A DNA stretch of 64,000 bases. Source: Amphiscolops sp. MND2022. Its lineage: Eukaryota. The notes beneath the pieces were generated by a model, which saw nothing but the letters and a program-made list of their open reading frames with translations, ran no database searches and was not told where the DNA came from. Both the position numbers and the translations under genes were made by a program. Shown here piece after piece: positions 4,590 to 55,427 of this stretch; within the stretch, counting starts at the first letter, position 1; the number at the start of each line of letters is the position of its first letter. The stretch covers positions 97,526,001-97,590,000 of the forward strand of contig OZ076410.1 of the NCBI GenBank assembly GCA_964187785.1, written 5' to 3'.

Positions 4590-4602
4590 TGGTGACAGGA
4601 GT
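4590..4602 (+). promoter_or_regulatory. Primer-binding site, probably tRNA-Leu
   Basis: TGGTGACAGGAGT directly after the LTR; 12/13 match to TGGTGTCAGGAGT, the complement of the 3' end of metazoan tRNA-Leu(CAG). tRNA identity is inferred. Confidence 0.75.
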
Positions 4603-5776
4603 CCCGAACCCACAACCATCGGGCTCACGAACGACAACACTAAATGGAAACCCAGAAGCGTAAACAATATTCCACAACTGACTGACGTGATGACAGAGAT
4701 CCATCACCTCCGAAACACAATGGGAGATACAATAACACAACCGAAAATTCTCCAAACTCAGGTGCCCCTATTCAAAGGAAACAGAGAGAAATACAACGAA
4801 TTCGAACACTTACTACTTAGTCATCTACAACCGCATGCGCACAAACTCACCGAGGAGCAGAAACTCAAAAATTTCAAGAGCCTCCTCAGAGATGACGCCA
4901 TTGAATTCTGGCAAACCCTAACCATCACAACGGAAACAACTCTGAAAGATATATTGGCCGCCTTCAAAAAAGAATATGCAAAAGAAGAGCTTTCAGAAGT
5001 CTCAAAGTTCAAGTTCGACCAGCTACGGTACGACCCGACAATTGAATCGTTCAGCACTTTCCTCGCCAACTACAAGAAAGTCGCCAAACAAGCTTATGGG
5101 GAAAAAGCGCAGGAAATTATCCAGACATTTCTATTCGCCAAACTACCAATCCAGCTCCAAAACGAACTGGCAATTGCGGGCAATTATGACGCTAGTATTG
5201 AAGATATAAAAAAATTCGTGCAGAGGAGATGCCAATACGCCCAGCTACTACCGAACCAACAACTCCTCCAACCATTCAATCAGGCCATCCAAACGCAAGA
5301 AGCCCCAAGCAAACCAGCAGTCACAAAACAAAATGAGACTGAACGACCAATAACCAAGAAAAAATTTGATGGGAACTGTAGATATTGCACAAATGGGCTG
5401 AGTTCCGAAAACGACTGCGAGACGAAGCAGCCGGCAACAACAACTCCCTAGCGCATAAGAAGTCCGAACAACAAAACACCCAAACAGAGGCACAACCGAA
5501 GTTCAATGCCAAATCAGTTTGCCAAATTTGTGGTTATACGGGCCACTCCGCAAAGTATTGCCGGTACAGGATCCCGCATACATCAGCCTACGGGAGTGTA
5601 CCATACAACAGGCACACCACAGTAGAAAACAAGGACTTCCGGCGCAACTTCCGAAGAGTTCACACCAATCCCTATCCAGCCAACGAAATGAACGATCTCA
5701 CTCCTACGGATCAACAACCACAAACGGGCAACGACTACTACCAACAGGAATTTGTCGAAAACTCATCCAACCAGCC

Positions 5777-5783
5777 AAAAAAC
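5777..5783 (+). promoter_or_regulatory. -1 ribosomal frameshift slippery heptamer A AAA AAC at the gag/pol junction
   Basis: CCA AAA AAC TTC TGA at the gag end, correctly phased X XXY YYZ; the long pol ORF (5519-7006) lies in the -1 frame. Confidence 0.7.
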
Positions 5784-8700
5784 TTCTGAAGCCACGTCAT
5801 CCGAAGGACCACTACTATAACAATGTGCGCAACGTAACTACTTACTACTACACTAAAAACTACAAAAACCAGGCAACTGATCGTCGGCAGGATCAGGAAC
5901 CCATTACTAATACTACTAACGAAACGACTAACAGCGGAGAGCACCCTTCTAACCCTCTCTCCAAGCCACCAAACTTACAACTTCAACCGACAAAAGACAA
6001 AAAACATCCAAACCCGACTACTACGATGGACAACAAAAAGAAAACATCAACCCGGAAAAAAGACGTGGCGATCCAGGTGTTAACTGCTATTCTCCAATTA
6101 AACAAAAAGGACAAGATAATATATGTCTCATTACAGTTTCGACAATACAAAAACCATGGACTCCTCGACACGGGAGCAATCAGAAGCGCAATGTCAGAAG
6201 ATGAACTCAGACGACTTCTATCAGCTCACCCAGCCGCACTCCTAGAAGAGTACCCAGCACCGGACTTCAAAGTCCAAATTGCAAACGGGAGCATTGTCCC
6301 GGTCCTGAAACAGGTACTGCTTCGCTTCTTCATCGGGAGTAAAGTTTTCGAGGAGACTTTCATGATCCTCTCCACCATGGGCAACATTTTGATTGGAATG
6401 TCCTTCTTTAAAAAGTATTCAGTGACACCTGACCTTGCCAACAATGTAGTCAAATTCCTGGACATTACCCTACAACTTAAACCAGAACGCGGACGGTACA
6501 AAATCCAAATGATAAAATTGCGAAGAACCCGAAAAACAGTGATACAACCGGACCACCAACTCATTGTCCCTGTCCTAGCGGAAAGAGACAGACCTCGGCA
6601 CAGTTCAGGGTACAGTAGAAACCTTTCCTGCATTCGAAAGGAAGACACAACTACTGGTGTCCCCAGCCCTGACACAAATCGCCGACATGAAAAGCCACGT
6701 TCAGATTACCAACCTAACCAGTCATACAATCACCCTCAACCCGAATACGACAGTGGCTACCTTCAGGATAATGACCCCAAACCAAGCGAAAAACCCAACA
6801 CAGATACCAACCGACGATGGTACCCAACGCCGGAGACATGTGACGACCCGTCCAAGCTGAATCGCATTGAAAAGCGAGTATATGACGAGATCACTAAACT
6901 CCGCGAGGAAGAGAAACTAGACCCAACGGCAGACGACCAGCAGCGCAAGGAGTTCCTTGCCAACTTCAAATGGAAAAACTCAATTTTGGATGAGCGAGAA
7001 CAATAACAAATTGAGAACCTCCTAGTGAAGTACAACAATGTATTTGCTAGACATCGCCTCGATATAGGCATCAATACCGACTTCAAAATCAAACTCACCC
7101 CGAAGCATGATGAACCAGTCTACGCGCAGAGCTTGCCAACACCCACCAACCTCAAAGACGACCTGCTCGTCGAACTAGCATTGGTGCAAGAGTATGAGAT
7201 CATTACAACGTTGCCGTACAGCACGTGTTCCTCACCCATATTTGCCCAACGCAAACCCAATGGGAAACTCCGCATCCTCGTGAACCTGCGCAGAATCAAC
7301 CACCTTTTGAAAAACGATTATAACCAACACAATCATCCGGTCACAACCATCGCCGACGCCGCCCAGCACATGGCCGGGAAGAAGTACTTCTGCAAGCTGG
7401 ATTGTTCGCAGGCGTACCTTTGTCTACAGATAGCGGATTCACAATCAGTACAGCTCGTGGCATTCAACTTTGGCAGCCGAACCTTTGCTTACTTACGACT
7501 GGCACAGGGACTCAATCGATCGCTCTCAGCATTCAACAGCACCGTGCGAGAATACGTTAATGCACTTGCGAAAGCGGATAAATGTGCTCAATATGTCGAC
7601 GACATTGGGATCGCTGCCCACACTGTTGAAGAACTACTGTCAAACATCGAAGCAGTATTCCAACAAATCCAAAAAGCAGGACTGAAACTGTCAATGTCCA
7701 AATGTGCGTTTGCCCACCCTCAAATCAATTTCCTAGGGAGAAGCATCACATCAAAGCGTGTCGCCCCACTCGAAGACAAAATCGACGACTTCCTCAAGAA
7801 AATCAAATTACCTACATCAGTCAAATCCCTCCAAAGGTACATTGGGTTCGTACAGTTCTGTTGGCAGTACATACCAAGCTTCGTAAAATAACACCACAAC
7901 ATCTTCGAAATCAACAAAAACCTCGCAAAAGCTGCAAAACTTTCATTACGGCTGCCACTACCTGACAAACAGCTCGTCATAATGTGCGATGCCAGCGAAC
8001 ACGCAGCAGGATATGTCCTTTTGATAGAAGACTATACCGAAACAAACCACGGCCCAATGAAGACGTACGCCCCAGTATCATTCAGATCCTAACGCTTCAC
8101 AGAAGGCCAAATGTCTTTAACAATGTACGCAAAGGAGTTTCTGGCGATGCACTTTGCTTTCGACAATTTTGCACACATACTTTGGGGTGTCAAAAAGCCA
8201 ACAATCGTAATGACGGATAACAAAGCACTGACACGGTTCTTTCAGTCCAAACGAATTCCCCCGAAGCTGTGGAATTACTGCGATCAAACGCTTCAATTCG
8301 AATTTGTACTTGCGCACGTCCCGGGAACCGAGAACCCTGCAGCAGATTACCTGTCACGCCTCGACATACGACCGGAGGAACGAATCCACCTCAAGCTCAA
8401 CGACCAGTTACCGGTCTTCCATGTCGAGATTGATTTGGCATCCAACACCAAAACAGGACGAAGAAGAAGAGGAGTACATACCTGATGACCAAAACACCAC
8501 TACCGCCAAACAAAATGATGCCATCAACGCCAATCTGGACCAGGTCCCCATGTGCAGCAACGAATCGAGTTGACAGTTTCTTGAGAGGACAGAAACCATC
8601 CGTCATCAGATCACACCATTCATCACCGGGCAACATGACGAGATGACGTTCACCCGCTTCAGGCGAAGGATTCATGACAACGCGGTAAACCAGGTATGCC

Positions 8701-10457
8701 CTAATGCGGAATTTCAAATATTCCAGGAACAGCTCGTAAACTCTGATATCCAACGCATGATTAGAATTTCGAACCAAAACGAAACTCTCTCTAATAATTT
8801 GAACTTTGAAAGCCAGTTTTTCCAAAAACTAGTAAAAAACAAGAAAAGACTTGAAGTAGTTAACAACGTCTTGTACAGGATTTTTTTGACGGTACTGAAA
8901 AAATTAAGTGTAAGCAAACTGTTACCCTTCCTGAAACCATCCGACAAATTATTCAATCACTACACGATGACCCTCTGCAAGGTCACCCTGGTTGTAACAA
9001 AATGCTACATGAACTGCGCAAAAGGTATTACTCACCTAACCTCTCTGAACTGGTTCTGCAATACGTCTCGAACTGTCAAGACTGCATCCGCTCAAAACCA
9101 ATCCGGAAAGCTGCAATCACACCTCCACTACAACAAATATACGATCCCTGCAACAGGCCTGAGAACATACTAGAAATGATTTAGTCGGCGAACTCCCGAA
9201 TTCCATTGGTTTCACGCACGTATAGGCAGCATACGACTACTTTTCTAGGTACCTCTTTGCAATATTAGTTCGTAAACCAGACACAAAATCAGTAGTAGAA
9301 GCACCCATGCAAACTTTTCACAACACTCGTACGTACCTAAAACAATCCTAACTGACAAAGGATCAACGTTTACATCTCAATTGTTCAACTCACCAATGGA
9401 ATCTGCCGGTATCAAAATCGAACACGCCACTGTAAAGCACGCACAAACGATTGGGATGGTAGAACGTTCCCACCAAAAACTTAAACAATACCTCAAAATC
9501 AACATCTCAGCCGATTCACCACAATGGAACAAATACGTCAACATGGCCAAAATGGCCCATAACACAACCTATCACCAAGCCATTCGATGCACACCCACTG
9601 AAGTCTTCCACGAATGAATCCCATTTAAAGCTCTTGTCGTTAAATTTGGAAACCCATTAACAGAACCAAGCAACGCCACTGACGTAACCGAGATACTAGA
9701 CAATATGAACAAAAAATTACAACAAACACATGACAACATAATTGAAGCCTTCCACAAATACAAAAATTACTACGACCGAAAAGCGCAAGCTTCGCCCCTG
9801 AAAGTAAACGATTTCACATTTCCGCTAAACAAAAGGCTGTCTGAACAATCTGAAAAAATTCCCTTCAAGGAATTCAAGTGGGAAGGACCCTACAAAGTCG
9901 TGAAAGTCCTGTCGAATTCAAACTACATTATACGTAAGATTGGTACTCTTCGTACGCAATGCGTCCACAGAATGAGGCTTCGCCTATTCACACCTAACGC
10001 ACCAATCGAAGACATTACCCATGACTCCTCACAATATTTCGAAGACCCTGATGCCCTCAACGAACAGGAATTGTTTGACAATCACATACCAACTCCAGTT
10101 ATTGAACAACCGCAACAAGCAATTCCTGAACAATCAGACTTCGAAGAACTACATGCGGATCACTGCATTATCTACTACGAACAACAAAGCGTAGAACCTG
10201 ACCAAAACAATTCCATACCAGAAAGCCACGCTGAAACACAAGAGCAATACCCGGACAACACCAGCATGAACAGTCCTGAAACAATAAATATTGAACACCA
10301 AACGAATGAACGCCTCACAACAACATCACGAAACACCATGTCCCGTAACGGGCTTAGACACAACCCAAAACCGACGCCGTATCCTGATTTCCTAATGCAC
10401 GAGCTACATACAACGCGTACACTTCAGCAACTACTACTGAAAAACAGAAGCCTATAA
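5777..10457 (+). pseudogene. pol: Gypsy pol (aspartic protease, RT, RNase H, integrase), multiply frameshifted
   Basis: Protease LLDTGA (~6160); RT YVDDIGI in 7025-7891; RNase H CDASEHAAGY and YAKEFLAMHFA; integrase HHCC remnant (CQDC), core and WEGPYKV C-terminal motif. Confidence 0.95.
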
Positions 10458-12008
10458 CAAGTTCTCCACTATAGTCTATTCAAAATCGTACCACCCACTA
10501 ATGACTGCCAACAGCAGTCATGGCAATATCTAGCCGGACCGCGAAGGTAATTGTTCTACAATTACGCCACACCACACTAGCCCTCATCCAGTGATACCAA
10601 CACTTCCAAAACGGAATTAAAGCAACTAGACAACCATTGCTTACTGTCGAAACTATCCGAGCGGTTTCACTCCTAACCACCAACTGCCGCTGAAAATGAA
10701 TGGACAGTAACGCAACGACTACAGACGCCAATCACTCCAATAAACACGGTACGGGAATACATGTAACGCGTAAATTAACGAGAGATAATTTAGTCAATTC
10801 ACACCAAACTTGCCATAGCCAAAATAGAAGCAAATCACTTCGAATGAAAACTGATCACAACAAACAGTGAACGAAAATCTCGTTCCCAAATAGTCTAACA
10901 AACTAACAGTGGCGATCTGCTGCCTGGCAAACGTTATAACAACCCAACCATACCCTCACCCATTACACCCTACACGCATAGTGCTGACTGTGTGGGTACG
11001 CCGTTAAAAAGCGTGCTTGTGTGGTTGGTCGTTAACATACAGATGAAGGTTGCTCTTTAGCAACTGGATTCAGTGTTAGTTTTGTATGGGTGGTTGCGAC
11101 GGCAACTCACCTTCCCAATTCAACGAACATCGAAAATAAAAACCAAGATCTAAAACCTACAACAACAAAGAATTCACCAAATCGAGAAAACCACGAACAC
11201 CTAAACTAGACCAACAATGCGCAGGCTTTGCCTCGCGTTGGGAAAAATTAAGGAGACCGCGGCCTCATCCTCTAATTAGCCTTCCAATTCGCGCACGCCT
11301 CAAGTCCTCAGTCTACCGTCTGACTACTACTGCAATTATCATAACATAGAATTTCCAAAAGTTCGCGACCTTAACGACACACATCACGAATGATGACGTC
11401 CCAGGACACACATGGATGACAGCGATGATGACGTTGGTTAGATAAATCGCTTCATGTAATACACCAAATACAGTAAAAACATACAACTTAGTCCTTAGGG
11501 TTAACATGAATCTTAAATGCACACCACATAAGTCACGTCTCAACCCAAGGATATAATCCTTGGGAGTACAGTCATTGAAACAAGCAAACTGCTATGTCAC
11601 TCACTTTGCGCTGCAGTGCTAGGGCCTAAAGAACCATGGTCTAAACGTCTCAATACCATTCTCGAGTATTCACTAACAACGAGCCTATGCAGTCATCAAC
11701 GGCATCATGCAAAAATGAAGCATGCAACGTAAACATACCCTAAATAACGCTTTACATGTAAAGTCCTAGGATGAAACAAAGAAAAGAAGAAGGTTCTGTG
11801 ACGGCAGGAACCACCAGACTCAATTACTATCTGAGGTACAAAAAAAAATTTTAACATCAATGGAAATCACAACAAGCACGATGAATCAATCAATCTATTC
11901 TACAAATCTCGAAGGGCACACAAAAGAAAATAGTAAATCAACAAAAAAGTGAGATCGTCGAATACAAGAAGTTTTACAAGTCTGATTACCAATAAAAGTC
12001 TACAACAA

Positions 12009-42575: not shown

Positions 42576-42845
42576 GGACCATGTGTCTTATCCCGCAACT
42601 ACACCTTGTTGGCAATTCCCCCAGCACGAAAACACATTTTGTTCTTGAATAAAAATGTTTCACTAATCAGAGAATATCATATGAAAGTAAATACTTAGAG
42701 GATTGTCTCTACAACTGTTTGGACACTTCTGGCAAAAAATTACCATTTGATAATATTGTCCAAAATAGCAGAAATTTACGTTTAAAACAAGTTGAAATTG
42801 TATAAAAAGTTCCCTATTTCAACGCAAGTTTTTTCCGCTCAACTA
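42576..42845 (+). mobile_element. Family B MITE, partial copy
   Basis: Starts GGACCATGTGTCTTAT; body colinear with 77-350. Confidence 0.75.
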
Positions 42846-42867
42846 CTAATTAGAGTACTACCGAGAC

Positions 42868-43146
42868 TAAAAGGTCCCCCCTTTTGATTTTTTTGGCACT
42901 GTGCGACTTTTTTTCGAAAATTTTTTAATGTCTTAAAGGGTCCCCCCTTTGAGTTTTTTTGTTATTTTGCAACAGAATGCATGCTTATAAATCAAAAAAG
43001 GTCCCCCCTTTTACATTTTTTGGCAGTGTGCGACATTTTCCGAAGGACAAAAAATTCTCGAAAGACTCAAGTTTTTTTCCAAAGAAAATGTTTTGCGCTT
43101 TTTGAGCCTTAGATATAGCGCCGACTTTAGACGTTCTCGTCTTGTT
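42868..43146 (-). mobile_element. Family A copy 6 (5' half)
   Basis: Minus-strand start AACAAGACGAGAACGTCTAAAGTCGGCGCTATATC. Confidence 0.7.
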
Positions 43147-43514
43147 ACCCTTAGTTCTCCGTATGATATTGCTTATTTGGTTTTCTTATTTGGTTTTCTT
43201 TCGCCTCTGTGTACAAAACCTACTTTTTTAAACCTTGATCGAGGCTCCGTTTTAGGCTGTTCCATTTTTACACTACATCCGTAGTGGTTTGCGTTTTACT
43301 AAGGAGGAAGCGGCGATTTGAGAACAAAGCGCTATATCCGAATTACGACGTTTTATTCGAAGAATAATTGCGTCATACTAATTGGAAAGTAGAGGTTCTG
43401 AATTATTGCTCCATTTCCGAATTTGGACGTATGTATATGTATTTATTTTTCGTTTCTACTTGGGTTTAATGTTTAGTCATCATTTTTTCTAGATTTTTAC
43501 GTTGTGTTTCATTC

Positions 43515-44120
43515 ATGATGCCGAAGAAGCATCCAACTTTCTCACCCCTTCAAATGAGAGGTGTCATAAAGCTATCCAACGGAAAAATCATGCATTGGAA
43601 TTGTTTCCGGATTTCATATAAAGTCACGACTGCTCTCATCGGGGATTCAATAGTAAGAGATATTTGCATAAACGGGGTATGTGCATATTCGATTCCAGGA
43701 GGAACTATAGAGGATTTTAGGAGACCAGAGGTTTTACTTCAACTCTGCCCCTACCAAAATATTATCGTTGGCAGCATTGGTGGAAATGACTTGACCACAA
43801 GAGAAGGGATATGTTTAAGGAATCCCGTTGATGTTTTTAATGATTTCATGGATTTGGTCAATTTGTTGGCTCTGTTTGTTGACATTGTTATGACTGTTTC
43901 GCAACGTTTTGGTGGCCTGAGTCAGGTGACAGATTTCAATAGACTTTTGGAGCAGTCTTCTGCCCTGTCAACTTATAAAACGAGACGCAAAGTGCACAGG
44001 CTACAGTGCTGGGAAGCTGACAAAGTGCACCTCACTCTATCAGGAAGAAGGGATTTCTGCAAGGCGGAAGGAGATCTTAGAAATGTGTTCCACTTTTTGC
44101 CCCATAGTTGCCCGAACTGA
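43515..44120 (+). CDS. SGNH/GDSL hydrolase-like protein (201 aa)
   Basis: Block I LIGDSIVR, block II IPGGT, block III GGND, block V DKVHL; uninterrupted ORF. Confidence 0.75.
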   Translation: MMPKKHPTFSPLQMRGVIKLSNGKIMHWNCFRISYKVTTALIGDSIVRDICINGVCAYSIPGGTIEDFRRPEVLLQLCPYQNIIVGSIGGNDLTTREGICLRNPVDVFNDFMDLVNLLALFVDIVMTVSQRFGGLSQVTDFNRLLEQSSALSTYKTRRKVHRLQCWEADKVHLTLSGRRDFCKAEGDLRNVFHFLPHSCPN

Positions 44121-44746
44121 ATTGCCACGTGCAAGTAAAATGTTTACTTCTCTGAATAATTCGAACTTGTATCTTTTCATTTGTTGAGGCCTTGAGATAA
44201 TTTCATTTGGTATTCGTTTTGGCTTTCTTCGGGAAATGTTTTCCCAAAAGTTATAACTGTGCCCCATTCATTCACGTGCTATTAATTAATGTTGGTTTCT
44301 TTTTTTTCCTAGGATACAACTTCGGTGACTTATTTTGCCGGCGTGTCCAGTTTACCTCTCAAGTTTTCTATGGAAAGCCTCTTTTAGGCTATCTGCGAAA
44401 AGGGTGTCCAAAAGAGCTTGTCACTTGCCCCCATCAATGTATGTTGGACTGCTTTTTTAACTTTTAACCAATCTCATAATCTTTAGCTAAAGAACTGTTT
44501 GTTCATCTTGACGGATGATTATTTGAAATATATTCACTAGTTTGTTTGTCTTGCAATCAAGTTTTTGATGCAATTGTTTTGTCAAGATTTGGTTTCTTCT
44601 TATTTGGTCAAGAAACTGCCTCTTTGATTATTGAGCTTTGTTGGTAAACTTTTAGGTGAGGTTCTTTTTTAAGGGCCTATGCCCATGTGCTACAGTAGAG
44701 TATTCCATAGTTACCTGCAGCATTTTTCAGTTTGTTTGTCGAGATG

Positions 44747-45760
44747 ACTGAAAAAAGGAAAAGTCAAAAAACTAACGAAGACGACACCTTAAATGATTAT
44801 CTCACGTTCTTGAATAATAAAGCTGCGTCAATGCGTTGGCTGTTTTATTGCTCAGCAGACAAAAAGTGCTTCGTTCTAACTTATAACCACAGTGTGTGGA
44901 CCAGGCACTTCTCACTACAAGATAAAATCGATCTAAGCCCAAACGCTTTTATGGAGATGAGGTACAATGGTAGTAGCTATAAATGAAGCTTGGTGAAGTC
45001 AAGAACTGCTGCTGAAGTTCGCGCAGCTCAGCGGAAGACGTTTCAGCGTCTCAATGAAGTTGAGCATACCCTTCCTTTGATTGAGCTAGATAGAAGTATC
45101 CAAGAACCTGTGGAACAAGAAGTCATTAGTTCCACCCAAAACATTGTTTTTGATGATGCGTTGATGAATGATCAGTCTAAGGCGCGGTCTCCAGCACAAG
45201 GCAAAGGGAAGAAAAATTGTACAATTGACCAATCTCTTCTGCTAGGCTAAACGCGACAGACATCGCATGATCCGAACGAGTTCAACTCCCACAATTTCCT
45301 AAAGATGCAGGGGTCTTTTTTCGACAATTGGCTGGAACAACAGAAACAGATGACGATGGGCATCCTCAGTCACAACAAAAGTGTAAACAAGAGTTTAAAC
45401 AGGTTGATTTCCGTGTTAGAAAGATCTGGAAAAGGCGACCAGGAAGCTGAGGCAGAAGGGTCCGAAAACGTTGACCCAGAATTCCTAATAAACGGAGAGT
45501 TAACCTTCTGGCCTTGCCGTAGGAGAAAAATGCGTCCATGTTTGGGCCGCCTTATTTTCGGTGATAAGGAAGACTCAGAGTTGCTAAATACTATGATATC
45601 ACCTGGTAAAGACCAAGAAAGTACGAGATCGAGTTGTTGCGGAACGAAGAAGTCAATTTTTGCCAAAGTTGTGAAAAAAAATATCCCAAGAGTCCACAAG
45701 TTGCCTATGCAGCTGCGCGTGAAGCTGCCAACCAAATGGGAAGAGAGTTTTGTTTGAAAT
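44747..45760 (+). pseudogene. Accessory ORF paralogue 1 with BEN-domain-like C-terminus (disrupted)
   Basis: ORF pieces 44732-44986, 44990-45250 and 45305-45757; N-terminal ~110 aa near-identical to the ORF at 46559; C-terminal GRLIFG...TRSSC...VVKKNIP. Confidence 0.5.
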
Positions 45761-46558
45761 ATCCTTCTCGTGTCGCGGGACCTAGTGGAAGTAGTAGCGC
45801 AAACTGAATTTTTTTCTTGAGGAGAAAAATGCTGAATGGTTCGCTGTTAGCCTTTTTTAGGCTACGTTAGAAACACAGCTTTGCGAGAACTGAAATGTCA
45901 TATCAAATTGACTTCTTTATATCTTTGAAACATTTTTCGGAAAGCCTTTTTCAGGCTTTCTTCGGGAAAACGATTCCCAAAAGGTGGAATTGTGGCACCC
46001 TCCTATTTATCTGCCTCACTACTTTTCTCCTTCATTGAGTCCCAAATGGCCAATAAACTTATATGAAATTTCGTTGATGCCTTGAATTACCTTTCACGTG
46101 TTGATTTATATGTTGCATTCTTTCTCTCCTAGGATACCATCTCCGATGACTTTTTTTGCCGCCGTTCTTTACTTCTCAAAATTTCTATGGAAAGCCTCAT
46201 TTAGGCTGCCCGCGGAAAAAGAGTTCCAAAAAAGCTTGTCTCTTGCTCCCACCAATGTATGTTGGACTGCTTCTTTTACACCATTCTCATAATCTCCTTC
46301 ACATTATGAACTGCTTGTTTATTATGCTGTTTTATATTTCGAAAAATATTTCACTGCTTTTTGATGCACTTTGTTTTTCATGTTTTGGTTACTTCAGAAT
46401 CTCTCAAGAAAATGCTTCATTGATTGTTGAGCTTTGTTGTTAACATTTCATCATAGGTTTTTTGTCTTTTATTTCAAGTCCTAAGCCCATATGCTACATT
46501 AAAGTCTTCAATAGAAAACTGCAGCCTTTTTCAGTGCATTTGATGATTAACTGTCGAG

Positions 46559-47950
46559 ATGACTGGAAAAAGGAAAAGTCAAAAAACTCACGAAGACGAC
46601 ACCTTCAATGAACATCTCACATTCTTGAATAATAAAGCTGCGTCAATGCGTTGGCTGTTTTATTACTCAGCAGATAAAAAGTGCTTCGTTCTTACTTATA
46701 ACCACAGCGTAAGGCCAAGGCACTTCTCACTGCAAGATAAAATCAATCTAAGCCCAAACGACTTTGTGAAGATGAGCTACAACGGTAGTAGCTTGATGAA
46801 GTTAGGAACTGCTGCTGAAGTTCGCGAAGCTCAGCGGAAGACGTATCAACGTCTCAATGATGCTGATAAAACCCTTCCTTTTGTTGAGCTAGATAAAAAT
46901 ATCCAAGCACCTGTGGCACAAGAAGTCATCAGTTCCACCCAAAACGCTGTTTTTGACGATGTGTTGTTAGATGATGTGTTGATGGATGAACAGTCTCAGG
47001 CGCGGTGTCAAGCACATGGGAAAGGGAAGAAAAAACAACATGTCGCCGGATCTTCTTTCCTTGCTTTCGGTTCATTGCCGCAAAGTACATTAGAACCAAC
47101 GTTGTTTTCTCAAAACAATGGAATCAGTGATTTGTTACTGAGTGAACTCCCGAAAGAAGACGAAGTTTTTCCTCCGAACAATCACATCACGGGTAAAAGT
47201 TTTGAGCCGGTCAGGGGTGCTTCGTTCACTTCTGGCTCCACGCCATTCGCCAGCCATGGTAAGTAATCTTTCATTTTCAGCTCTCACAATTACTTTAGAC
47301 TGGCAAAGCCAAAAATATGGGTTATCCTATGTTCAGAATTTTGTTGATTGTGACTTTTTCCTATGCCACTGACTACTTCCAAAACGATTTCCTATTCTTC
47401 GGTAACTGATTTTTTGTTTTCCGACTTTCAGATCGCTCTGCATCTCTCAGCTCTGACCCTTGCCAGCTATTAGAGCTACAACATTCAATTTTCTCAAGAT
47501 ATCTCGAACAGCAGCGAGAATTCACAACTGGCCTTATGGTTCAAAACAAAAGCCTAACGCGGAATCTCAAACTTGTGCTGTCAGTTTTGGAGTCTGCTAA
47601 CTTTGAAGAAGAGGTTAATGAGGTAGCACTGGAAGTTGAATGTGCTGGTCCCAATTTCTTCTTTAATGGTGTAAATCTTCTGTAACTTCCGACGAGCAGT
47701 CAGACTACAACGTTTGGCAGGACATTGGGTCGTGCAATTTCCACAAAAGATAAGGGGAAAAAGGCGAATTGTGACTTGATTGACACAATGATATCACCCG
47801 GTAAAACCCAGGATAATACCAGGTCAAAGTGTTTCGAGAAAAAAAACAATGTTCGCTAAGGTTGTGAAAAGAAAGTTCCCCAAAAGCCCCAAAATTGTTT
47901 AGGCCAACCAAATGGGTTGAGAATTTCGTATGAAACATCCTTCTCGTGTC
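46559..47950 (+). pseudogene. Accessory ORF paralogue 2 (spliced) with BEN-domain-like C-terminus (disrupted)
   Basis: ORF 46559-47266; phase-1 donor CATG|GTAAGT (~47258) and acceptor TTTCAG (~47430) give an in-frame exon homologous to 45305-45757. TFGRTLGRAI...DLIDTMISPGK...VKRKFP...ANQMG-EFRMK fits BEN spacing. Confidence 0.5.
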
Positions 47951-50470
47951 GCGGGAACTAGTGGAAGTAGCGACTCAAAGTGAATACAATTTTTCTCGAA
48001 GAGAAATATGCTGATTGAATCGCTCTGTGAGTCTCTTTTAGGCTACGTTCAGAAGGTCCACTTCCGAGAACTGAAGAGCTTTATCGGATTGGCTTGTTTA
48101 TATCTCTAAAACGTTCTTTGGAAATTTTGCTTCAGGCTATCTTCGAGAAAAAAATCCCAAAAATTGCAAATGTGCCCCTCTTATGTATCTGCCTCACAAG
48201 TTTTGTCCTTCATAGAGTGCCAAAAAGCAAATAGACTTCTTTATGAATCTTTATGCCTTGATTTACCATTCACGTGCAATTAATTTATTTTGCTTTCTTT
48301 TTTTCCTAGGATACCACCTCGATGACTTACTTTGCCGCCGTATCCAGTTGACATGTTTTCCTCTCAAATTTTCTATGGAAAGCCTCTCTTAGGCTATCCG
48401 CGGAAAAAGGTGTCCAAAAGAGCTTGTCACTTGCCCCCATCAATGTATGTTGGACTGCTTTGTTAACCAATCTGATAATCTTTAGCTAATGAACTGTTTG
48501 TTCATCTTGACATTTGATTATTTGAAAGAGAATTGACTAGTTTGTTTGTCTTGCAATCAAATTATCAATGCAATTGTTTTGTCAAGTTTTGGTTTCTTCT
48601 CAGTCGGTCAAGAAACTGCTTTTTTGATTATTGAGCTTTGTTGGTAATTGTTTAGGTGAGGTTCTTTGTTTTTTTATCGGATTTTTGTTCATTTTAGACT
48701 GACATTTGTCCGTTATCTGCAGTTCCTTTCATTTAGCCTAAACTTTACAGTTTACGGAGAGTACTGAAAATATACCGTTTTCAATTTTGTTGAGTGAAAA
48801 GGCGACTCTGTCTCTTTCCGACATAACAGTTCTAACACTGAAATCTTTTTTTGTTTCAATTTAGAGTGCCTAATTTTCTATGGAAAGCCACCTTTAGGCT
48901 ATCCGCGCAAAAGAACTCCACGAGAGTTGGTCTGGTGCCCCCCCCCAGTTATTAACTTGCTTGACTGCTACGCTAGTCATTAATAGAGTCTCCATTAGCC
49001 AATGATTTTTCGTTGATTTATCTTATTCCTTTTTGTCTTGATTTAAAACTTTTTAAGTCTTTGGCGAATCATTCTTTCTCTGACTTTCCTTATACATCAT
49101 TGAAAGAGCTACACTGCAATGTTCAAGTGTATTCAAGTGACATGCTTACCACTCTGAAGATATCTTTGGAGAGCCTCCTTTAGGCTATCCGCGGAAAAAG
49201 GTGTCCAAAAAAGCTTGTCCCTTGCCCCCATCAATGTATGTTGGACTGCCTTCTAACTTTAGCATGTGTAATCTCATAATCTTTAGCTCATGAACTGTTT
49301 GTTCATCTGAACATTTGATACCTTGAAATATAATTCACTAGTTTGTTTGTCTTGCAATCAAATTTTTGATGCAATTGTTTTCTCAAGTTTTTGTTTCTTC
49401 TCAGTTCGTCAAGAAACTGCCTCTTTGATTATTGAGCTTTGTTGGTAATTGTTTAGGTGAGGTTCTTTGTTTTTTATCGGATTTTTGTTCATATTAGACT
49501 GAGATTTGTCCGTTATCTGCAGTTCCTTTCATTTAGCCTAAACTTTACAGTTTACGGAGAGTACTGAAAGTATACCGTTTTCAATTTTGTTGAGTGAAAA
49601 GGCGACTCTGTCTCTTTCCGACACAACAGTTCTAACACTGAAATCTTTATTTGTTTCAATTTAGAGTGCCTAATTTTCTATGGAAAGCCTCCTTTAGGCT
49701 ATCCGCGCAAAAGAACTCCACGAGAGTTGGTCTGGTGCCCCCCCAGTTAATAACTTGCTTGACTGCTACGCTAGTCATTAATAGAGTCTCCATTAGCCAA
49801 TGATTTTTCGCTGATTTATCTTATTCCTTTTTGTCTTGAGTTAAAACTTTTTAAGTCTTTGGCGAATCATTCTTTCTCTTACTTTCCTTATACATCATTG
49901 AAAGAGCTACACTGCAATGTTCAAGTGTATTCAAGTGACATGCTTACCACTCTGAAACTATCTTTGGAGAGCCTCCTTTAGGCTATCCGCGGAAAAAGGT
50001 GTCCAAAAACGCTTGTCCCTTGCCCCCATCAATGTATGTTGGACTGCCTTCTAACTTTAGCATGTGTAATCTCATAATCTTTAGCTAATGAACTGTTTGT
50101 TCATCTGAACATTTGATACCTTGAAATATAATTCACTAGTTTGTTTGTCTTGCAATCAAATTTTTGATGCAATTGTTTTCTCAAGTTTTTGTTTCTTCTC
50201 AGTTCGTCAAGAAACTGCCTCTTTGATAATTGAGCTTTGTTGGAAAATGTTCAGGTGAGGTTTTTTGTTTTTTTCCGGATGTTTGTTCAGTTTAGACTGA
50301 CATTTGTCCATTATCTGCAGTTCCCTTCTTTTAGTTTTAACTTTACAGTTTACGGAAAGTACTGAAAATATCCCGCTTTTAATTTTGTTAAGTGAAAAGG
50401 CGACTCTGTCTCTCCCCGACACCACAGTTCTAACACTGAAATCTTTATTAGTTTCAATTTAGATTGCCTA

Positions 50471-51125
50471 ATGGAAACCTACGCCTATGTTTACCGAATT
50501 CTTGGCGAATGTGACGGACATTTGTTCCGCAAAAGGTATGAACTCAGAAGTCGACCTCATCTAACGTTTTTCCAACTAGCCAGCGAATCTGTTTTTGATG
50601 AACTTTTGACAAGAAAAAAAGTTTTTATTGCTGAACAAAACATTGCACGCGGCTTATGAAGCAGCTGCGATTAGTGGCATGCAGTTCAGAGAAGCTTCTT
50701 ACAATGGATATGGCTGCTTTAACTCAACTGGTCGGACAATGGATAAAAAGCATCAGCCTAGTCTTCTTGGGCTCTTAACCAAAATTCCAGAAAGCGAATT
50801 TGAATCTTGCCAATTGTCCGTATTTGACGACACTCCAAGATGTAAGTACAATCAAATTATGGTTGGACAGGCTAGGTTTGTCAATCATTCCTGTGAGAAC
50901 AACGCGATCTTTGTGCCCAGTTACTTTCAGAACAAAAAGTCTGTGAGAATTCAACTTGTCAAATCTGTTGGTCCAGGGGAAGAAATTCTTGTTTGGTATG
51001 GTAGCGATTACTTCGGAGAGCACAACAATGAATGTAAGTGCAAAGCTTCCTTTCACGAAAAGAGATTTGAGTTGTTGTCGTCTGCAAAAACAACTCGAAA
51101 TATTTCATCACATTCCCAAGAATAA
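50471..51125 (+). CDS. SET-domain protein, Suv4-20/KMT5B-like (one-base frameshift in the A7 run at 50614-50620)
   Basis: ISGMQF...LLGLLTKI...LSVFDDTPR...IMVGQARFVNHSC...GPGEEILVWYGSDYFGEHNNECKC parallels Suv4-20 (SGF...LVGCIAEL...FSVMYSTRK...LWLGPAAFINHDC...[24 protein letters not shown]). Removing one A joins 50471-50659 to 50628-51125. Confidence 0.85.
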
Positions 51126-51305
51126 CAATAAAGCGAAATCGGGTTCAGTTACCTCGCCTACTTCAAAAGAGAAGACGTGTGGTTCCAAGTTACGTTGAGC
51201 CTGACACACCATCTTCTAGTCCTGACGAATTGGATGTTGAACAGAACGAGATGAACTCTCTACCTGAGATGACGCTCGGCATGCCATCGACGAGCACACC
51301 CTTAC

Positions 51306-53449
51306 ATGAATTATCTTTCCCGAACTTTTCTTCTTCGAATATTGTCACTGGAAACAAAAACAAAGGACCACGTCTTGTTGGGAAATGAGCTTTCATCTTT
51401 CCCAACGATGACACCGACGATGTCTTCATCTTATTTTAGTGATAGTTCTTCGGCTCCAAATAGTGATAGCCTTTCCGATGGTGATAATCGGAATCCTCTT
51501 TACCCTGGCTCCCTTATCAGTGTCGAAAACTTCTTGTTGACCATAGAAGCTATAGCTGTGTCTTATTGTCTTTCAGACAAAGCGATGCGAGACCTTTTGA
51601 AATTTCTTCAAATCATCCTACCATCTGGTAACAAATGCCCAAGTGAGAGAACTTTGAAACGTTCCCAACGATCTGCGTTGCCGTATAGAAGTGAAAAATG
51701 TGGATCTAGTACACTGGCTTTCCTATCACCTGCCTCTGAACTAGAAGCTGTGATCAAGAGTAATTATGAATCAATCCGCAAATATGACAGTGACAGAATC
51801 GATTGCCTCGACTTGAAACTGCCATTTTCCACTGGCATTATTTCCAATGATGAGTTCATTGCACATCTTATTTTGAATGTTGACGGCGTTTCGTTGGTTA
51901 AATCTTCGAATCGAAGCTTGTGGCCGGTTTGGTTATCATTAGCCAATCTCCCAACCATTCTCCGGTCTGCTTTCAGGAATATAGTTCTAGCTAGTTTGTG
52001 GTTGACTTTTGGAAAACCAAGTTGGGAAATTGTCATATCTTTGTTGGAGAGAGAGTTTCAAGAAGCTCGGTTCATTCATCTCATTGGAAAAGTTGTGCGC
52101 TTGAAATTCCAAATTATATTAATGATGGCTGATCTTCCTGTAAAAGCTTCCATTTTGTGTCATAAGCAATTTAATGGGCAGTATGGGTGTTCACTGTGTT
52201 ACTGTCCCGGCAAGGTGATCAAATGCGTCATTAAATCTGGTAAAAGCTCGCACATTCGCATGTACGAGGCTGACAGTGAAATTCGAATGCGAACTGGGGA
52301 ATTCCATTTACAGCATCTATCTGACTTGTCTCACATAAATAGAAAGCCTCTCATTGCGAATTTTAGTGTTCTCGGTCGAAGCCATTTGGATAGGTTGTTA
52401 CCCAGTTTCCCCTTAACATGGCCAATCGACTACATGCATCAGGTTCTAGTAGGGGTGATGAGAAGCTTTCTGAATGTGGCGTTGACAAATTAACTACCCG
52501 GAGCAAAGAAATAATTGATCTTTTTCACAAGTCCTTAAAAGCTCCGAGTGTAATACGGCGAACCCCCAGACCACTTTTTGAGCTCAAACATTACAAAGCT
52601 TTCGAGCTCGAAACTTGGCTTCTCTATATTGGTCCTGTAGTTTTTCAGCTGCTAGAAAGTGGAATTTACTCTGCTTTTATGAAGTTGTCTTCGGCTGTTC
52701 GAAGTTTGCTTTCAGGCTGCTCCGAGCTCGACACCTGTGAATCTCTTCTAAATGAATCCTGTCTGTTCATGGCTAACATAGATAAGAAACCAAAAACATA
52801 TAAGTTGCACTCTTTGCAACACCTAGCCTGGCAGGTTAAAAACTTTGGTCCTCTGTGGACTACTTCCGCTACAGCATTTGAACCAGCGCACCACATTTTA
52901 GCTGTTAAATTCACAGGCTGTGTTAATCATTTGGAATTCCTGGTGGAAAGATATTCGAGATGTAAACGGTTATTTCGAACCGAGTTTAAATATCCTCTTT
53001 TGGGCGCTTTCTTCGAACGAACTTTGAGCACTGAGTCCAAAATTGACCGCATGATTTCGATGCAGCTTATGAAACAATTCAAAGAACGCGGTTTCAAGTT
53101 GAAGGCGAGAACAAAGGTCGAGCGACTCGTCAACGAATCCGAAAGTTACGAGTTATATCAGAGTGCAAGTTATGTCGAGTTTCAATTTGAACGCAAAGTT
53201 TCCATTGGACGGGTTCTTTTTTTCTACGAGAAAAATGGCAGGGATCGTTGTCTCATTGAAAAGTTGGAATGCGTAGAACTTGCAATCCCCGGAAACTGTA
53301 GTGACATGAACGCTTTTGTTTTCGTTTTTGTGAAAACTGGTGCGATACGCGATCTTGATTTATCATGCTTGAAGGGCTTGTTTTTGCGTATGAGTTTTCA
53401 GGACAAAATCTACTTTGTGCGACTGTTACTTCATTTCCATCATAACTGA
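51306..53449 (+). pseudogene. EnSpm/CACTA (CMC superfamily) DDE transposase, one frameshift near 52480
   Basis: PLYPGS N-terminal motif; LNVDGVSL (D1); SLWPV...NLP; ADLPVKA (D2); QFNGQYGCSLC; IDYMHQVLVG; LWTTSATAFE (E). Confidence 0.9.
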
Positions 53450-53910
53450 ATATATTGAAAACATTTGTCTTTTTCAAAGTTGTTGCATTCGGAAGAGGAC
53501 CTCTTCAGGTCGCCTCCCCAGATAACTGGCATGTATCGATCATTATTGATTCTTCATTTGTTCTTATCTTGCACAATCGACATTTGTAATCATTGAAAAA
53601 AATGTGCTCGACTGTTGTTTTCCTCTTTAAGAGAATTTTGTTCTAAGTTTGTTTATTCTGCCCCATAAAATTTTGTGCAGGGGAGTTATTTTATCGAAAG
53701 TGAAGCGTTTTTTTTCAAAGTCTGCAAAATCCGACATTTTTGAACATGATCTCTATTCCAGGTAATTTTGTTCCGGGCATGACCAATAGTCGTGAAAATA
53801 AAAGATGTGGAACCTTCATACAATCCACATCTAATCGCTGTTTCTGTTCTATCCCAACAGTGTTGGTTTTTGATCCCATCCTAAGTCATGTAGATCTCAT
53901 TGGCAGTGTT

Positions 53911-54510
53911 TATAGTCGGCGCTTTTCTATTAAGGGAAAAATGCCCGTCTAGAGCACTGACAGTTTTTTTTCTTCAGACAACAATCCTCACACTGATTGG
54001 TCCACTTTTCTTACAATTCTTACGATCTTAAAATCTTACAAATCTTACTTAGCAAATTTAAAATACTGGAACAAAAGCTTGCGAAGTAGTGTTTATACAT
54101 CATCTAAGAAACTCAAAGGGACCAAAGGGTACTCCCTTAGTGTATTTTCGGCTCTTTGAGACTTTTTTTCCAAAAAAGAAATACCCAGAAGGGTCCGCCC
54201 TTCAATTTTTTGGAGTTTTCCGACAGAACGGATGTTGAAAAATCCCAGAGGGTCCCCCTTCAGTTTTTTCGGCATCGTGAGACTTTTTTTCAAAATTTTT
54301 TTTCCACCAAAAGTGCCTCTCCTTCACTTTTTTTGATGATTTGCGCCAGAATGGATGAAAAATCTCAAAGCGTCTCTTCTGGTGCGCCAATTCGGTTCAA
54401 CTTTTGGGTTTTTTCCGGTACCGTAGAAGAGAATACTTTGACACTTTGAAGTCCTTTTGCTGTTTTTGACCCTTTGATATGGCGCCGACTTGGGCCGTTC
54501 CCTGCTTGTT
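53911..54510 (-). mobile_element. Family A copy 7
   Basis: TAGTCGGCGC at 53913 and GGCGCCGACTTGGGCCGTTCCCTGCTTGTT ending at 54510. Confidence 0.75.
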
Positions 54511-55179
54511 AGAAATTTTGTTCGCTTTATTTATATCTTTCATCTTTTAAAAAAAATTGTACACTTCATTACTATCCGGGGTTTTAATAACTATTTCTGA
54601 TAGTTTTGAATATAGTGTTCCTTCTTCTTCTTCTTATTCAGATATCAATATTGCAGGTGTTGTATTTTACTTCTTGTAAACTTTTTTGGGACCCGATAGA
54701 GGCCACGTTCCCGTCGTGGGTCCTGTCATGAGTGATTGGAATGCCATACTAGCTGAGAGCCTCTCTTCACAAACACAGTATAATGACTTGGGTATAATTC
54801 TGAAAGCTCTGCTTGTGGAGAACCTAGAAAGTCCGGCAACTTTGAATATAATTTCATCTAGTTTTGTTGTGGAATTATTCCTTTGCAGAGATGTCAATCC
54901 CATGATATCCGCTTAATTTGTGCTCTTTTTCGGTATTTCCATCATTTTTGAGGGTCTTTTCGGAATTCATCAATCCGAAACTAGATTTTATAGTATTATT
55001 CTTTTCATAATTCATCGAATCTGGTGTATCCAGTTCAACGGCCAGTTCAAAAACTGGGCCTTCGCATTAATTTGCATCGATGATCATCCTCGGCGTCGGG
55101 GAATTAATCCATGAATCATGGGTTTATCATCATGGGAATATCCATGAATTAGCCATGATGGTTAACCTGGGAAGAGAAT

Positions 55180-55427
55180 AGCAAATGAATGTAAATACTT
55201 AGAGGATTGTCTCTACAACTGTTTGGACATTTCAGGCAAAAAAATACCATAATTTTTTTGATATTATTGTCCAAAATAGCAGAAATTTACGTTTGAAACA
55301 AGCTAAAATTGTATAAAAAGGCCCCTATTTCAGCGCAAATTTTATCCGCTATAGTTCTAACGAGCAACTTTTAACTGACAGTCAATGTAATGGATAGGAT
55401 TATGTCGACATCAATTATTTTATTGCA
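55180..55427 (+). mobile_element. Family B MITE, internal fragment
   Basis: Colinear with 195-425 (AATACTTAGAGGATTGTCTCTACAAC...ATTATGTCGACATC). Confidence 0.75.

Follow-up and report, generated by a model that had tools for sequence, protein, structure and literature searches.

Introduction

The usual picture of a cut-and-paste transposon is that of a transposase gene flanked by two inverted repeats. In the CMC group (CACTA/Mirage/Chapaev) the transposase is defined by the motif D, D, C(2)C, H(3)H, E (PMC12730594), and 5'-CAC...GTG-3' termini have been reported as invariant in both Chapaev (PMC4079192) and the animal CACTA families (PMC6004678). Here we describe a lineage of DNA transposons represented by a decayed copy in a 64-kb stretch of DNA (hereafter the window). 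Its transposase carries the D, D, C(2)C, H(3)H, E residues, and DUF1258 and Transposase_21 matches are found in the element. As in the CMC group, terminal inverted repeats (TIRs) occur together with subterminal repeats and a second, probably DNA-binding protein is encoded beside the transposase, while the 2-bp target site duplication (TSD) is like that of the animal CACTA element ENS1_Cis (PMC6004678). Membership in the group is judged by TIRs and a short (2-5 bp) TSD, both of which were found, and we assign the element, which is 10-17 kb in size, at the level of the CMC group. However, its termini are CCCAGG...CCTGGG instead of CAC...GTG (CACTA in plants), its transposase bears an N-terminal SET domain, and it adds an esterase gene to accessory genes that are of the BEN type rather than the TnpA type. 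In the literature we found no published description of such a set of SGNH, BEN and SET genes in CMC elements.

Several other systems are comparable in part. In SETMAR, as in the element described here, a single polypeptide carries SET at the N-terminus and the transposase at the C-terminus. However, SETMAR is one domesticated primate host gene in which a Tc1/mariner transposase is joined to a SETMAR-type SET domain, whereas the present fusion functions as the transposase of a CMC element that exists in multiple copies and was mobile recently, with a SET domain nearest to KMT5B/C. According to Kojima and Jurka (2014), as cited in PMC12730594, oomycete HarbingerS and MuDR families carry SET histone methyltransferase genes, and fungal transposons carry TET/JBP dioxygenases (PMC12730594). 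The likeness lies in a DNA transposon encoding a (here predicted) enzyme that writes or erases an epigenetic mark, but those transposons belong to other superfamilies and hosts; moreover, as far as the citing paper describes the oomycete elements, SET is an incorporated gene there, whereas in the present element SET is joined to a CMC transposase, and BEN-like and esterase genes occur alongside. The esterase resembles that of LINE ORF1 proteins such as zebrafish ZfL2-1 (PDB 4c1b), also a small SGNH-type esterase of a mobile element, and its profile aligned with 4c1b at the GDS, GG and GxND blocks with a non-significant E of 1.5. Unlike the LINE enzyme, which is a domain within a retrotransposon ORF1, it is encoded by a free-standing gene of a DNA transposon. 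Finally, homologues of the N-terminal domain of the accessory proteins carry Pfam BEN at the same relative position, which links them to BEN-domain proteins, although the element protein itself has neither a Pfam nor a PDB-sequence match.

Results

Extent and condition of the copy in the window

In our reading, positions 42836-55171 of the window hold a single copy, dead and truncated at its 5' end, of a large autonomous CMC-type DNA transposon (Table 1). The probability of about 0.85 that we give to this explanation is a joint one, covering element identity, gene set, mobility and the inferred roles of the proteins.

Table 1. Features of the transposon copy and its flanks (positions in the window)
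Feature	Position	Strand	Remarks
Target DNA belonging to another dispersed repeat	42669..42839	.	duplicated at 55173-55350; 88-92% identical direct repeat
Transposon copy	42836..55171	+	12.3 kb, 5'-truncated, decayed; ~92% identity to C11 and C9 copies
Short repeat segment ("family A" type of the earlier note)	42862..43146	+	second occurrence at 54120-54347
SGNH/GDSL-like esterase gene	43515..44120	+	intact ORF, 201 aa; motif blocks, weak fold match
Module front part, copy 1	44351..44670	+	directly 5' of BEN-like gene 1; 88.5% to 48356-48670
BEN-like gene 1	44720..45804	+	tblastn with intact 420-aa family-2 protein, 37-40% identity, frames 3 then 2
Module front part, copy 2	46168..46470	+	5' of BEN-like gene 2; 72%
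BEN-like gene 2	46553..47971	+	tblastn; broken, frames 3, 2, 3; first ORF is P0004
Tandem module array, ~2.7 units	48356..50472	+	last unit overlaps start of SET-transposase gene
SET-transposase gene	50441..53449	+	KMT5/SUV4-20-like SET, then CMC DDE transposase; aligned to intact C11 ORF
CMC-type transposase ORFs	51306-52493 and 52418-53449	+	Pfam DUF1258
Right subterminal region	54889..55159	+	many TCATGG/CCATGA motifs
Right TIR, ~48 bp	55124..55171	-	left partner absent from window
Target DNA, second copy of duplicated flank	55173..55350	.	direct-repeat comparison within window

The earlier note had proposed a 10.6-kb CACTA element that runs from CACTA (43271) to CAGTG (53908) and is flanked by a TTA duplication of the target. 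The strings do exist (CACTAC-ATCC-GTAGTG at 43271 and CAGTG at 53908), but the two paralogous copies on C11 and C9, which align to the window over 42836-55171, run uninterrupted through both points (42836-44304 and 48778-55158). Such short strings are not distinctive, since the element contains six occurrences of CACTA and 11 of TAGTG, its reverse complement. Moreover, relatives have 5'-CCCAGG...CCTGGG-3' termini and a 2-bp TSD. These boundaries, the size and the TTA duplication are therefore refuted, and the chance that they are right is practically nil: both proposed ends are internal, and the window holds a truncated pseudo-element of 12.3 kb whose true right end is at 55171 (...GGTTAACCTGGG), a terminus common to the C11 and C9 copies.

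The copy in the window corresponds to positions ~3376-11279 of an 11.3-kb full-length relative, plus the pair of BEN-like genes. Its left 3.4 kb, left TIR included, is missing, and its left boundary (42836-42840) is a truncation junction at which a CGYT microhomology joins the target to an internal position of the element; no terminus lies there. About 170 bp of target are present on both sides of the element, and this segment is single in the same dispersed repeat elsewhere (C5 copy). The left part with its TIR was lost via the microhomology join, which also duplicated the target, and about 8% decay followed; the loss resembles the outcome of aberrant repair or of an insertion at one end only. 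Frameshifts have hit both BEN-like genes and the SET-transposase gene, which are now pseudogenes, and the esterase ORF is the sole open coding region left. The right subterminal region recurs in direct orientation in the left arm of the full-length copies. The segment at 42862-43146 is found in the sister family between the second BEN-like gene and SET, with 80% identity.

Full-length relatives, termini and mobility

The full-length relatives on C11 and C9 are 10.3 and 11.3 kb long, with 48-bp TIRs starting 5'-CCCAGGTTRACC and with TSDs of TA/TA and CA/CA. A sister family (family 2), 67% identical at the nucleotide level to the window family (family 1), comprises five copies of 16,783 bp that are 99.7-99.9% identical and lie on four chromosomes with sharp common ends. 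Termini were read in these two families, and every copy there starts with CCCAGG and ends with CCTGGG. At least 10 paralogous empty sites lack the whole unit of one family-2 copy, the flank matches overlapping by exactly 2 bp (TSD AT). These sites show precise family-2 insertion with a 2-bp TSD and contradict an origin by segmental duplication. The elements move by precise insertion, duplicating 2 bp, with TIRs of about 48 bp, and the young 16.8-kb family looks capable of moving.

A 30-bp terminus had 336 matches in the genome, including the window site (C2:97581142-97581171), against none for the control. Many of these matches are inward-facing pairs 600-1000 bp apart, and MITE-like derivatives of the element are present; the subterminal repeats of the elements are CATGG-rich.

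The window copy is interrupted by modules, lacks the left TIR and is adjoined by other repeats, as could be expected of unrelated repeats and host genes that came to lie side by side by chance. However, the same order is found in all five 16.8-kb copies, which are 99.8% identical, lie on four chromosomes and share sharp ends, and again in a third family, and the empty sites lack the entire unit. A chance mosaic is thus refuted, and we regard it as highly improbable.

Gene set and internal repeat module

The five co-oriented genes of the earlier note were recovered as five coding regions on the + strand (SGNH-like, two BEN-like, SET and transposase), and the internal repeat module was confirmed at its location and is absent from the rest of the window. 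Its unit is about 795 bp long (48356-49146), it occurs at three places (Table 1), and the number of units differs between the C11 and C9 copies. Family 2 has the gene order of the window, the third family keeps the order SGNH-like, BEN-like, SET and transposase, and in another assembly a BEN-like gene lies downstream of a SET-transposase. SGNH, BEN and SET thus accompany the transposase in the five near-identical family-2 copies, in the third family and in many distant families, and homology among copies extends far upstream of 51306. Related copies support the claim that one CMC-kind transposon carries these genes as a set, and the gene set of the lineage consists of an SGNH/GDSL-type esterase, one or two BEN-type accessory genes and a SET-bearing DDE transposase.

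The accessory genes could instead be useless passengers, host fragments captured in the manner of Pack-type or transduplicating elements. The C11 and C9 copies, which are 98.6-98.9% identical and lie at different sites with proper TSDs, are BEN-less derivatives that have nevertheless transposed, so the BEN-like gene is dispensable in cis; the two BEN-like paralogues of family 2 also have a dN/dS of about 0.46. However, between families the pN/pS values were 0.19/0.80 for SGNH, 0.27/0.75 for SET, 0.21/0.73 for the transposase and 0.36/0.81 for the BEN-like genes, and by these sequence estimates each of the four genes has far less non-synonymous than synonymous change, the latter being saturated. 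In addition, SGNH-like ORFs, BEN-like genes and SET accompany transposases with only 28-36% mutual identity, the BEN-like gene lies next to the SET-transposase in a different assembly too, and the young family has full-length ORFs with few or no introns. A passenger status is accordingly unlikely.

The SET-transposase gene

In the window the SET-transposase has about four frame changes (near 50630, 51116, 51382 and 52480), whereas in the C11 copy SET and transposase form one ORF of 1001 aa. In the window SET scored 38.8 bits (cut-off 22.4) and DUF1258 41.5 bits (cut-off 33.1), within overall ranges of 35-39 and 41.5-44 bits, respectively, and the intact family-2 protein matched Transposase_21 with 30.9 bits (cut-off 28.6). 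In family 2 an in-frame intron between SET and transposase is proposed from the sequence. Fusions recur genome-wide, in distant families (as shared ORFs) and in other assemblies, and DUF1258 or Transposase_21 was present in all nine long matches with an N-terminal SET. The earlier note had suggested that a BEN protein might recruit a separate methyltransferase; since SET is part of the transposase polypeptide in intact relatives, this idea is superseded.

Among PDB sequences, the SET domain is nearest to KMT5B/SUV420H1/2 (E 4e-13 to 1e-12), with only the C-terminal half aligning, and the next-best match was KMT2C (E 6e-5); by sequence, the domain is of the KMT5/SUV4-20 type (KMT5B/C). The GYG, RFxNHSC, V-x-Y (catalytic Tyr) and post-SET Cys (C-x-C) motifs are kept in families 1 and 2, and three distant SET fusions have N(S/N)DC in place of NHSC. 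Eight transposases with 30-65% identity share the invariant residues D177, D260, C279-x2-C282, H486-x3-H490 and E510.

Host fusions of SET and transposase are known (SETMAR), and 3bo5 is among the weak PDB matches of the SET domain, as would suit a domesticated host gene cluster made up of a SETMAR-like fusion and its neighbours. However, the genome contains at least 105 matches to the transposase and at least 124 to SET, many of them broken; TIRs, TSDs, empty sites and MITE-like derivatives exist, and the window copy itself is a pseudogene. Domestication is refuted for this lineage and has hardly any probability left, and a single domesticated descendant may exist elsewhere.

The SGNH-like esterase gene

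Five sequences from three families, with 50-86% identity, share four invariant motif blocks (G56-D57-S58, G75-G76, G102-G103-N104 and D180-x-V-H183), whereas a Pfam search with the protein itself gave no match. The multi-copy 201-aa ORFs that it matches also receive sub-threshold Lipase_GDSL_2 matches, and among Atlas features the GDSL/SGNH clusters scored 0.93 (recognition 2840). Among structural matches of the AlphaFold model (pLDDT 51), the GDSL-like lipase 3p94 shared the top rank with other alpha/beta hydrolases (for 3p94, Z 7.5 and an rmsd of 3.7 over 140 residues). The SGNH identity proposed earlier is plausible from the invariant blocks and this weak fold evidence.

The BEN-like accessory genes

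The two BEN-like genes of the window are paralogues, and the first is broken by stops and one frameshift, its ORFs being fragmented. The encoded protein has a beta domain at its N-terminus, a coiled coil and, at its C-terminus, a domain plausibly of the BEN type. The BEN part of the earlier call did not stand on the protein itself, which had no match to Pfam BEN (PF10523) even at E 10; BEN entries were absent from the PDB sequences matched by its profile, and no BEN fold match was found for the C-terminal model (below pLDDT 55), which is the unreliable part of an AlphaFold model with pLDDT 47. What stood was homology to a locus passing the Pfam cut-off: residues 308-409 match C1599:138587-138868 (E 1e-5), where PF10523 scores 29.4 bits (cut-off 23.2). 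At four loci a homologue of the N-terminal domain is followed about 700 bp on by a PF10523 match, in one case within a single 354-aa ORF, and the nearest Atlas clusters by features and shape contain BEN. The BEN identity is therefore plausible, by way of transitive sequence homology only.

The best structural matches of the predicted N-terminal beta-barrel were the Tudor domains of KDM4 (JMJD2A/C) (Foldseek probability 0.96-0.98, E 0.05-0.1; VIA Z 5.2, rmsd 2.4 over 54 residues). They include 2qqs, the JMJD2A tandem Tudor with a bound H4K20me3 peptide.

Discussion

In a live element the transposase would bind the TIRs and then cut and paste, and the BEN-like protein, by analogy with CACTA TnpA, may bind the subterminal repeats and help to join the ends. 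The SET domain borne by the transposase could methylate lysines of nearby nucleosomes (H4K20-like) or of a partner protein. In our preferred reading, this methylation would aid repair of the break made at excision or insertion; alternatively, it could tune local chromatin in favour of the element. All these functional roles are inferred.

A further and rather doubtful idea, suggested by the structural models, is that the KMT5-like SET on the transposase as a writer and the Tudor-like barrel of the BEN-type protein as a reader form a matched chromatin pair. If true, chromatin at the element or at the break it makes would be marked by the one and then recognised by the other, and transposition would be coupled to repair or self-regulation.

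The lineage keeps a methyltransferase-like SET domain, BEN-type proteins and an esterase under selection across deep divergence. It is a mobile counterpart of the domesticated SETMAR fusion and would be, besides the LINE ORF1 esterases, a second, independent case of a mobile element with a need for an SGNH esterase. For annotation, it accounts for stray SET, BEN-like and GDSL-like ORFs that number in the hundreds in this genome and risk being mistaken for host chromatin genes. It thus offers a natural system in which to ask whether a transposon writes chromatin marks for its own benefit.

Termini of the element and its full-length relatives

A whole-genome search with the window transposase ORF as the query retrieved two close paralogues (89-90% amino acid identity), referred to as the C11 and C9 copies after the sequences on which they lie, and five copies of a 62%-identical family (family 2). 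The C11 and C9 copies aligned with the window at ~92% identity across 42836-44304 and 48778-55158, and the alignments ran unbroken through positions 43271 and 53908. The CACTA and CAGTG strings which the earlier note had put forward as candidate ends of the element are present at these positions, but they are ordinary internal sequence. The right terminus common to the window, C11 and C9 copies is ...GGTTAACCTGGG, corresponding to window position 55171, and the flanks diverge beyond it. To the left of the start of the window copy, the C11 and C9 copies continue for 3.4 kb and end in the same 48 bases in inverted orientation, starting 5'-CCCAGGTTGACCATCATGG.

The C11 and C9 copies were 98.6-98.9% identical to each other and were inserted at different sites with proper 2-bp target site duplications (TSDs). 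The SET domain and the transposase form a single intact ORF of 1001 aa in the C11 copy, but its esterase (the SGNH-like first ORF) is frameshifted; the esterase of the C9 copy is intact, but its SET domain has an early stop. The BEN-like gene pair is absent from both copies, as would be expected after unequal recombination between the module copies on either side of these genes. Since the two copies occupy different sites with proper TSDs, the BEN-less derivative has moved, presumably with help in trans.

The 30-bp terminal inverted repeat (TIR) of this family 1 had 336 occurrences in the genome, compared to none for the control. Many occurrences were inward-facing pairs 600-1000 bp apart (e.g., C1:54344638-54345576, C2:12413977-12414631 and C4:18433851-18434524), which constitute a sizeable population of MITE-like non-autonomous derivatives. 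An older, heavily broken relative (~80% nucleotide identity) was also found on the reverse strand at G000:C7:30798000-30817999 (L038/L048). It contains ~8 tandem units of ~400 bp, each made of segments matching window 53726-53911 and 54633-54861; the array thus arose by amplification of a 3' non-coding part of the element.

Features of the window element (window G000:C2:97526001-97590000 in the 1.07-Gb eukaryotic genome G000; ORF listing and Pfam scans) and related loci in the genome
Feature	Position	Strand	Details
SGNH-like ORF	43515-44120	+	201 aa, intact; ORF listing
Module front, ahead of each duplicated-gene copy	44351-44670 and 46168-46470		first 320 bp of the module
Duplicated (BEN-like) gene, in pieces	44.7-45.8 kb and 46.55-48.0 kb	+	ORF listing
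~795-bp module	48356-50472		2.7 tandem units
SET-domain ORF	50628-51125	+	Pfam SET 38.8 bits, cut-off 22.4
Transposase ORF 1	51306-52493	+	DUF1258 41.5 bits, cut-off 33.1; Transposase_21 weak
Transposase ORF 2, overlaps ORF 1	52418-53449	+	ORF listing
Full-length family-1 element, C11	G000:C11:15192449-15203727 (L031/L039/L040)	-	11,279 bp, flanks TA/TA
Full-length family-1 element, C9	G000:C9:34586142-34596395 (L042/L032/L041)		10,254 bp, flanks CA/CA
Family-2 copy, fully delimited	G000:C11:33251347-33268129		16,783 bp; inside a repeat adjoining Pao-type retrotransposon genes
Family-2 copies, other regions	G000:C4:6594000-6613999; C5:54345000-54364999; C3:69795000-69814999; C5:70230000-70249999		regions holding copies
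Sub-threshold GDSL ORFs, examples	C4:38534834-38537154; C8:33812015-33813554; C11:32627586-32629124; C3:13361412-13361765

Conservation of the gene set in other families

The ORFs, Pfam matches and module positions bear out the genes and the repeat module described in the earlier note, and the ~795-bp module had no further occurrence in the 64-kb window. Relative to the intact ORF of the C11 copy, the SET-transposase gene of the window has ~4 frame changes. Both window copies of the duplicated gene are broken, and the SGNH-like ORF is the sole intact one. When additional conserved ORFs were sought in the left 3.4-kb and right 1.8-kb arms, none common to the families was found. A short repeat, its units resembling TAAAAGGTCCCCCCTTTTGA..., occurs twice inside the window element (42862-43146 and 54120-54347) and, at 80% identity, at a different internal position in family 2 (L035:8331-8607); it may be an independent small inserting repeat or a shuffled part of the element.

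The five family-2 copies were 99.7-99.9% identical over >15 kb and shared the right terminus ...GGTCAACCTGGG. Contigs in another assembly of this genome supplied the left end, and three copies start at an identical base with CCCAGGTTTACTGTCATGG. The order and orientation of the genes are as in the window: the homologue of the first ORF (209 aa) is followed by two copies of the duplicated gene (420 aa each), the SET ORF (321 aa) and the transposase ORF (719 aa). All of these are open in most copies, two copies having one stop in SET. The left and right flanks of the C11 family-2 copy were searched separately in the genome. In at least 10 other copies of the flanking repeat, the match to the left flank directly adjoins that to the right flank, with an overlap of exactly 2 bp (e.g., C7:44991535-44991536 and C9:38190771-38190772). 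These are paralogous empty sites and prove that the element inserted precisely, duplicating 2 bp (AT). Family 2 is probably still active or was so until very recently.

The order is also kept in L050, a third and more distant family of this genome, with an SGNH-like gene (49% amino acid identity) and one BEN-like gene (42%) followed by the start of SET. The grouping of SGNH-like, BEN-like and SET genes, which the earlier note had proposed from a single element, recurs with the order kept in L050 and, together with the transposase, in the five family-2 copies. The gene set is a property of the transposon.

Between families, synonymous sites were saturated and non-synonymous change was low: pN and pS were 0.19 and 0.80 for the SGNH-like gene, 0.27 and 0.75 for SET, 0.21 and 0.73 for the transposase (dN/dS ~0.09), and 0.36 and 0.81 for the BEN-like gene. 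This implies that all four genes have been kept as proteins across the divergence of the families.

Origin of the window copy

The left TIR is missing from the window copy. At its left junction (42836-42840), a CGYT microhomology links target DNA to an internal position of the element (~3376 in the C11 copy). In addition, 171 bp of target at 42669-42839 are repeated right after the right TIR (55173-55350, 88-92% identity). This segment is present only once in another genomic copy of the same host repeat, and the truncated element is therefore bracketed by a ~170-bp duplication of target. The flanking duplication is not a TSD made by the transposase. We read these junctions as pointing to an aberrant one-ended insertion or a break-repair event, not normal transposition. 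The window copy is an ordinary dead element.

The SET-transposase

In family 2, 228 nt separate the SET ORF from the transposase ORF, which shares its frame, and an in-frame GT-AG intron of 321 nt between them is possible, the openness of the frame having been checked; in searches the two ORFs served as separate queries. Genome-wide there were at least 124 SET matches and at least 105 transposase matches, which were adjacent at many loci, down to 28-36% transposase identity, and often lay within one ORF (C4:38529258-38531279, 1043 aa; C10:35933602-35935587, 747 aa). With the SET part as the query, a filter-free search across 1.84 billion representatives yielded 1231 matches. When long proteins with N-terminal matches were scanned, nine out of nine, from several assemblies, contained SET together with DUF1258 or Transposase_21.

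The similarity of the SET part to its nearest relatives, KMT5B/KMT5C (SUV4-20; E 4e-13), extends to the post-SET Cys motif, and the SET motifs GYG, NHSC, Tyr and C-x-C are conserved. In three distant SET-transposase fusions (P0055, P0107 and P0037) NSDC or NNDC replaces NHSC; in such branches SET may have been retained and its catalysis lost. The transposase residues D, D, C(2)C, H(3)H and E, the signature of CMC transposases (PMC12730594, PMC4079192), are invariant. The 2-bp TSD of the lineage matches that of animal CACTA elements (PMC6004678). The termini of the lineage, with CCCAGG, differ from the CAC...GTG ends of Chapaev and of the examined animal CACTA families (PMC4079192, PMC6004678).

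The SGNH-like and BEN-like proteins

Pfam scans with the full-length SGNH-like and BEN-like sequences, and with their separate domains, gave no match up to E 10. Word-index protein searches returned four matches for the SGNH-like protein and two each for the BEN-like protein and the SET part, all of them self or close kin.

An alignment of five sequences from three families revealed that the four SGNH blocks, GDS, GG, GGN(D) and DxVH, are preserved exactly in the first ORF. By language-model features it belongs with GDSL/SGNH clusters (score 0.93, recognition 2840). Its AlphaFold2 model, a poor one built from the 5-sequence alignment, best matched the structure of the GDSL-like lipase 3p94 (Z 7.5, rmsd 3.7 over 140 residues), and the tied group also contained several other SGNH enzymes. 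Because the model is poor and Foldseek found nothing at E <= 0.001, this match is a lead and not proof. In a profile comparison with PDB sequences the first three blocks aligned to the LINE ORF1 esterase 4c1b at a non-significant E of 1.5. The protein also matches multi-copy 201-aa ORFs which Lipase_GDSL_2 touches below threshold. Upstream of many distant SET-transposase genes, at a distance of 5-6 kb and on the same strand, there are similar sub-threshold GDSL ORFs of 176-199 aa, often as a tandem pair. We consider it likely that the first ORF encodes an SGNH protein, and from its distribution the esterase seems to have been part of the entire SET-transposase lineage for a long time.

The BEN-like protein is predicted to consist of an N-terminal alpha/beta domain of ~100 aa (pLDDT ~80), a disordered linker, a coiled coil and a poorly modelled helical C-terminal domain. 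Its profile drew a blank against PDB sequences apart from spurious LRR and adamalysin matches. However, residues 308-409 matched C1599:138587-138868 (E 1e-5), a locus scoring 29.4 bits with Pfam BEN (cut-off 23.2). At four other loci a homologue of the N-terminal domain is followed ~700 bp on by a Pfam BEN match, once in a single 354-aa ORF, and the Atlas clusters closest to the protein by features and by shape contain BEN. Both domains lie downstream of the SET-transposase gene in another assembly (L049), as in distant families of this genome. Taken together, these indirect but concordant lines favour a BEN-type C-terminal domain, with a fair measure of doubt. Two independent aligners suggested a weak resemblance of the modelled N-terminal domain to the Tudor domains of KDM4; it is likewise a lead and not proof, the AlphaFold2 model (5-sequence alignment) being poor and Foldseek finding nothing at E <= 0.001.

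Relatives and possible roles of the gene products

Esterases in mobile elements have a known relative in the LINE ORF1 proteins that carry them. SET genes are carried by oomycete HarbingerS and MuDR elements, as cited in PMC12730594, and TET/JBP genes by fungal transposons (PMC12730594). Searches of published papers on SET with CACTA, EnSpm, Chapaev or Mirage yielded no description of a fusion of a CMC transposase with a KMT5-like SET domain or of this gene set.

The lineage described here moves by cut-and-paste with TIRs and a 2-bp TSD, conserves a four-part gene set and has SET fused to its transposase. The last 336 bp of the window element contain the motif TCATGG/CCATGA six times and the other 12 kb contain it twice, and family 2 has ~170-bp tandem arrays in the same orientation in both subterminal regions. 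In function, the BEN-like protein would correspond to the TnpA of CACTA elements, with the CATGG-rich subterminal repeats as its sites of action. The SET domain would modify chromatin, or a partner protein, where the transposase acts. H4K20 methylation has a role in break repair, and SETMAR provides a similar analogy, although SETMAR is a domesticated host fusion whereas the fusion here sits in a mobile CMC element. By these analogies, we favour a role of the SET domain in which it would assist the repair of the transposition break.
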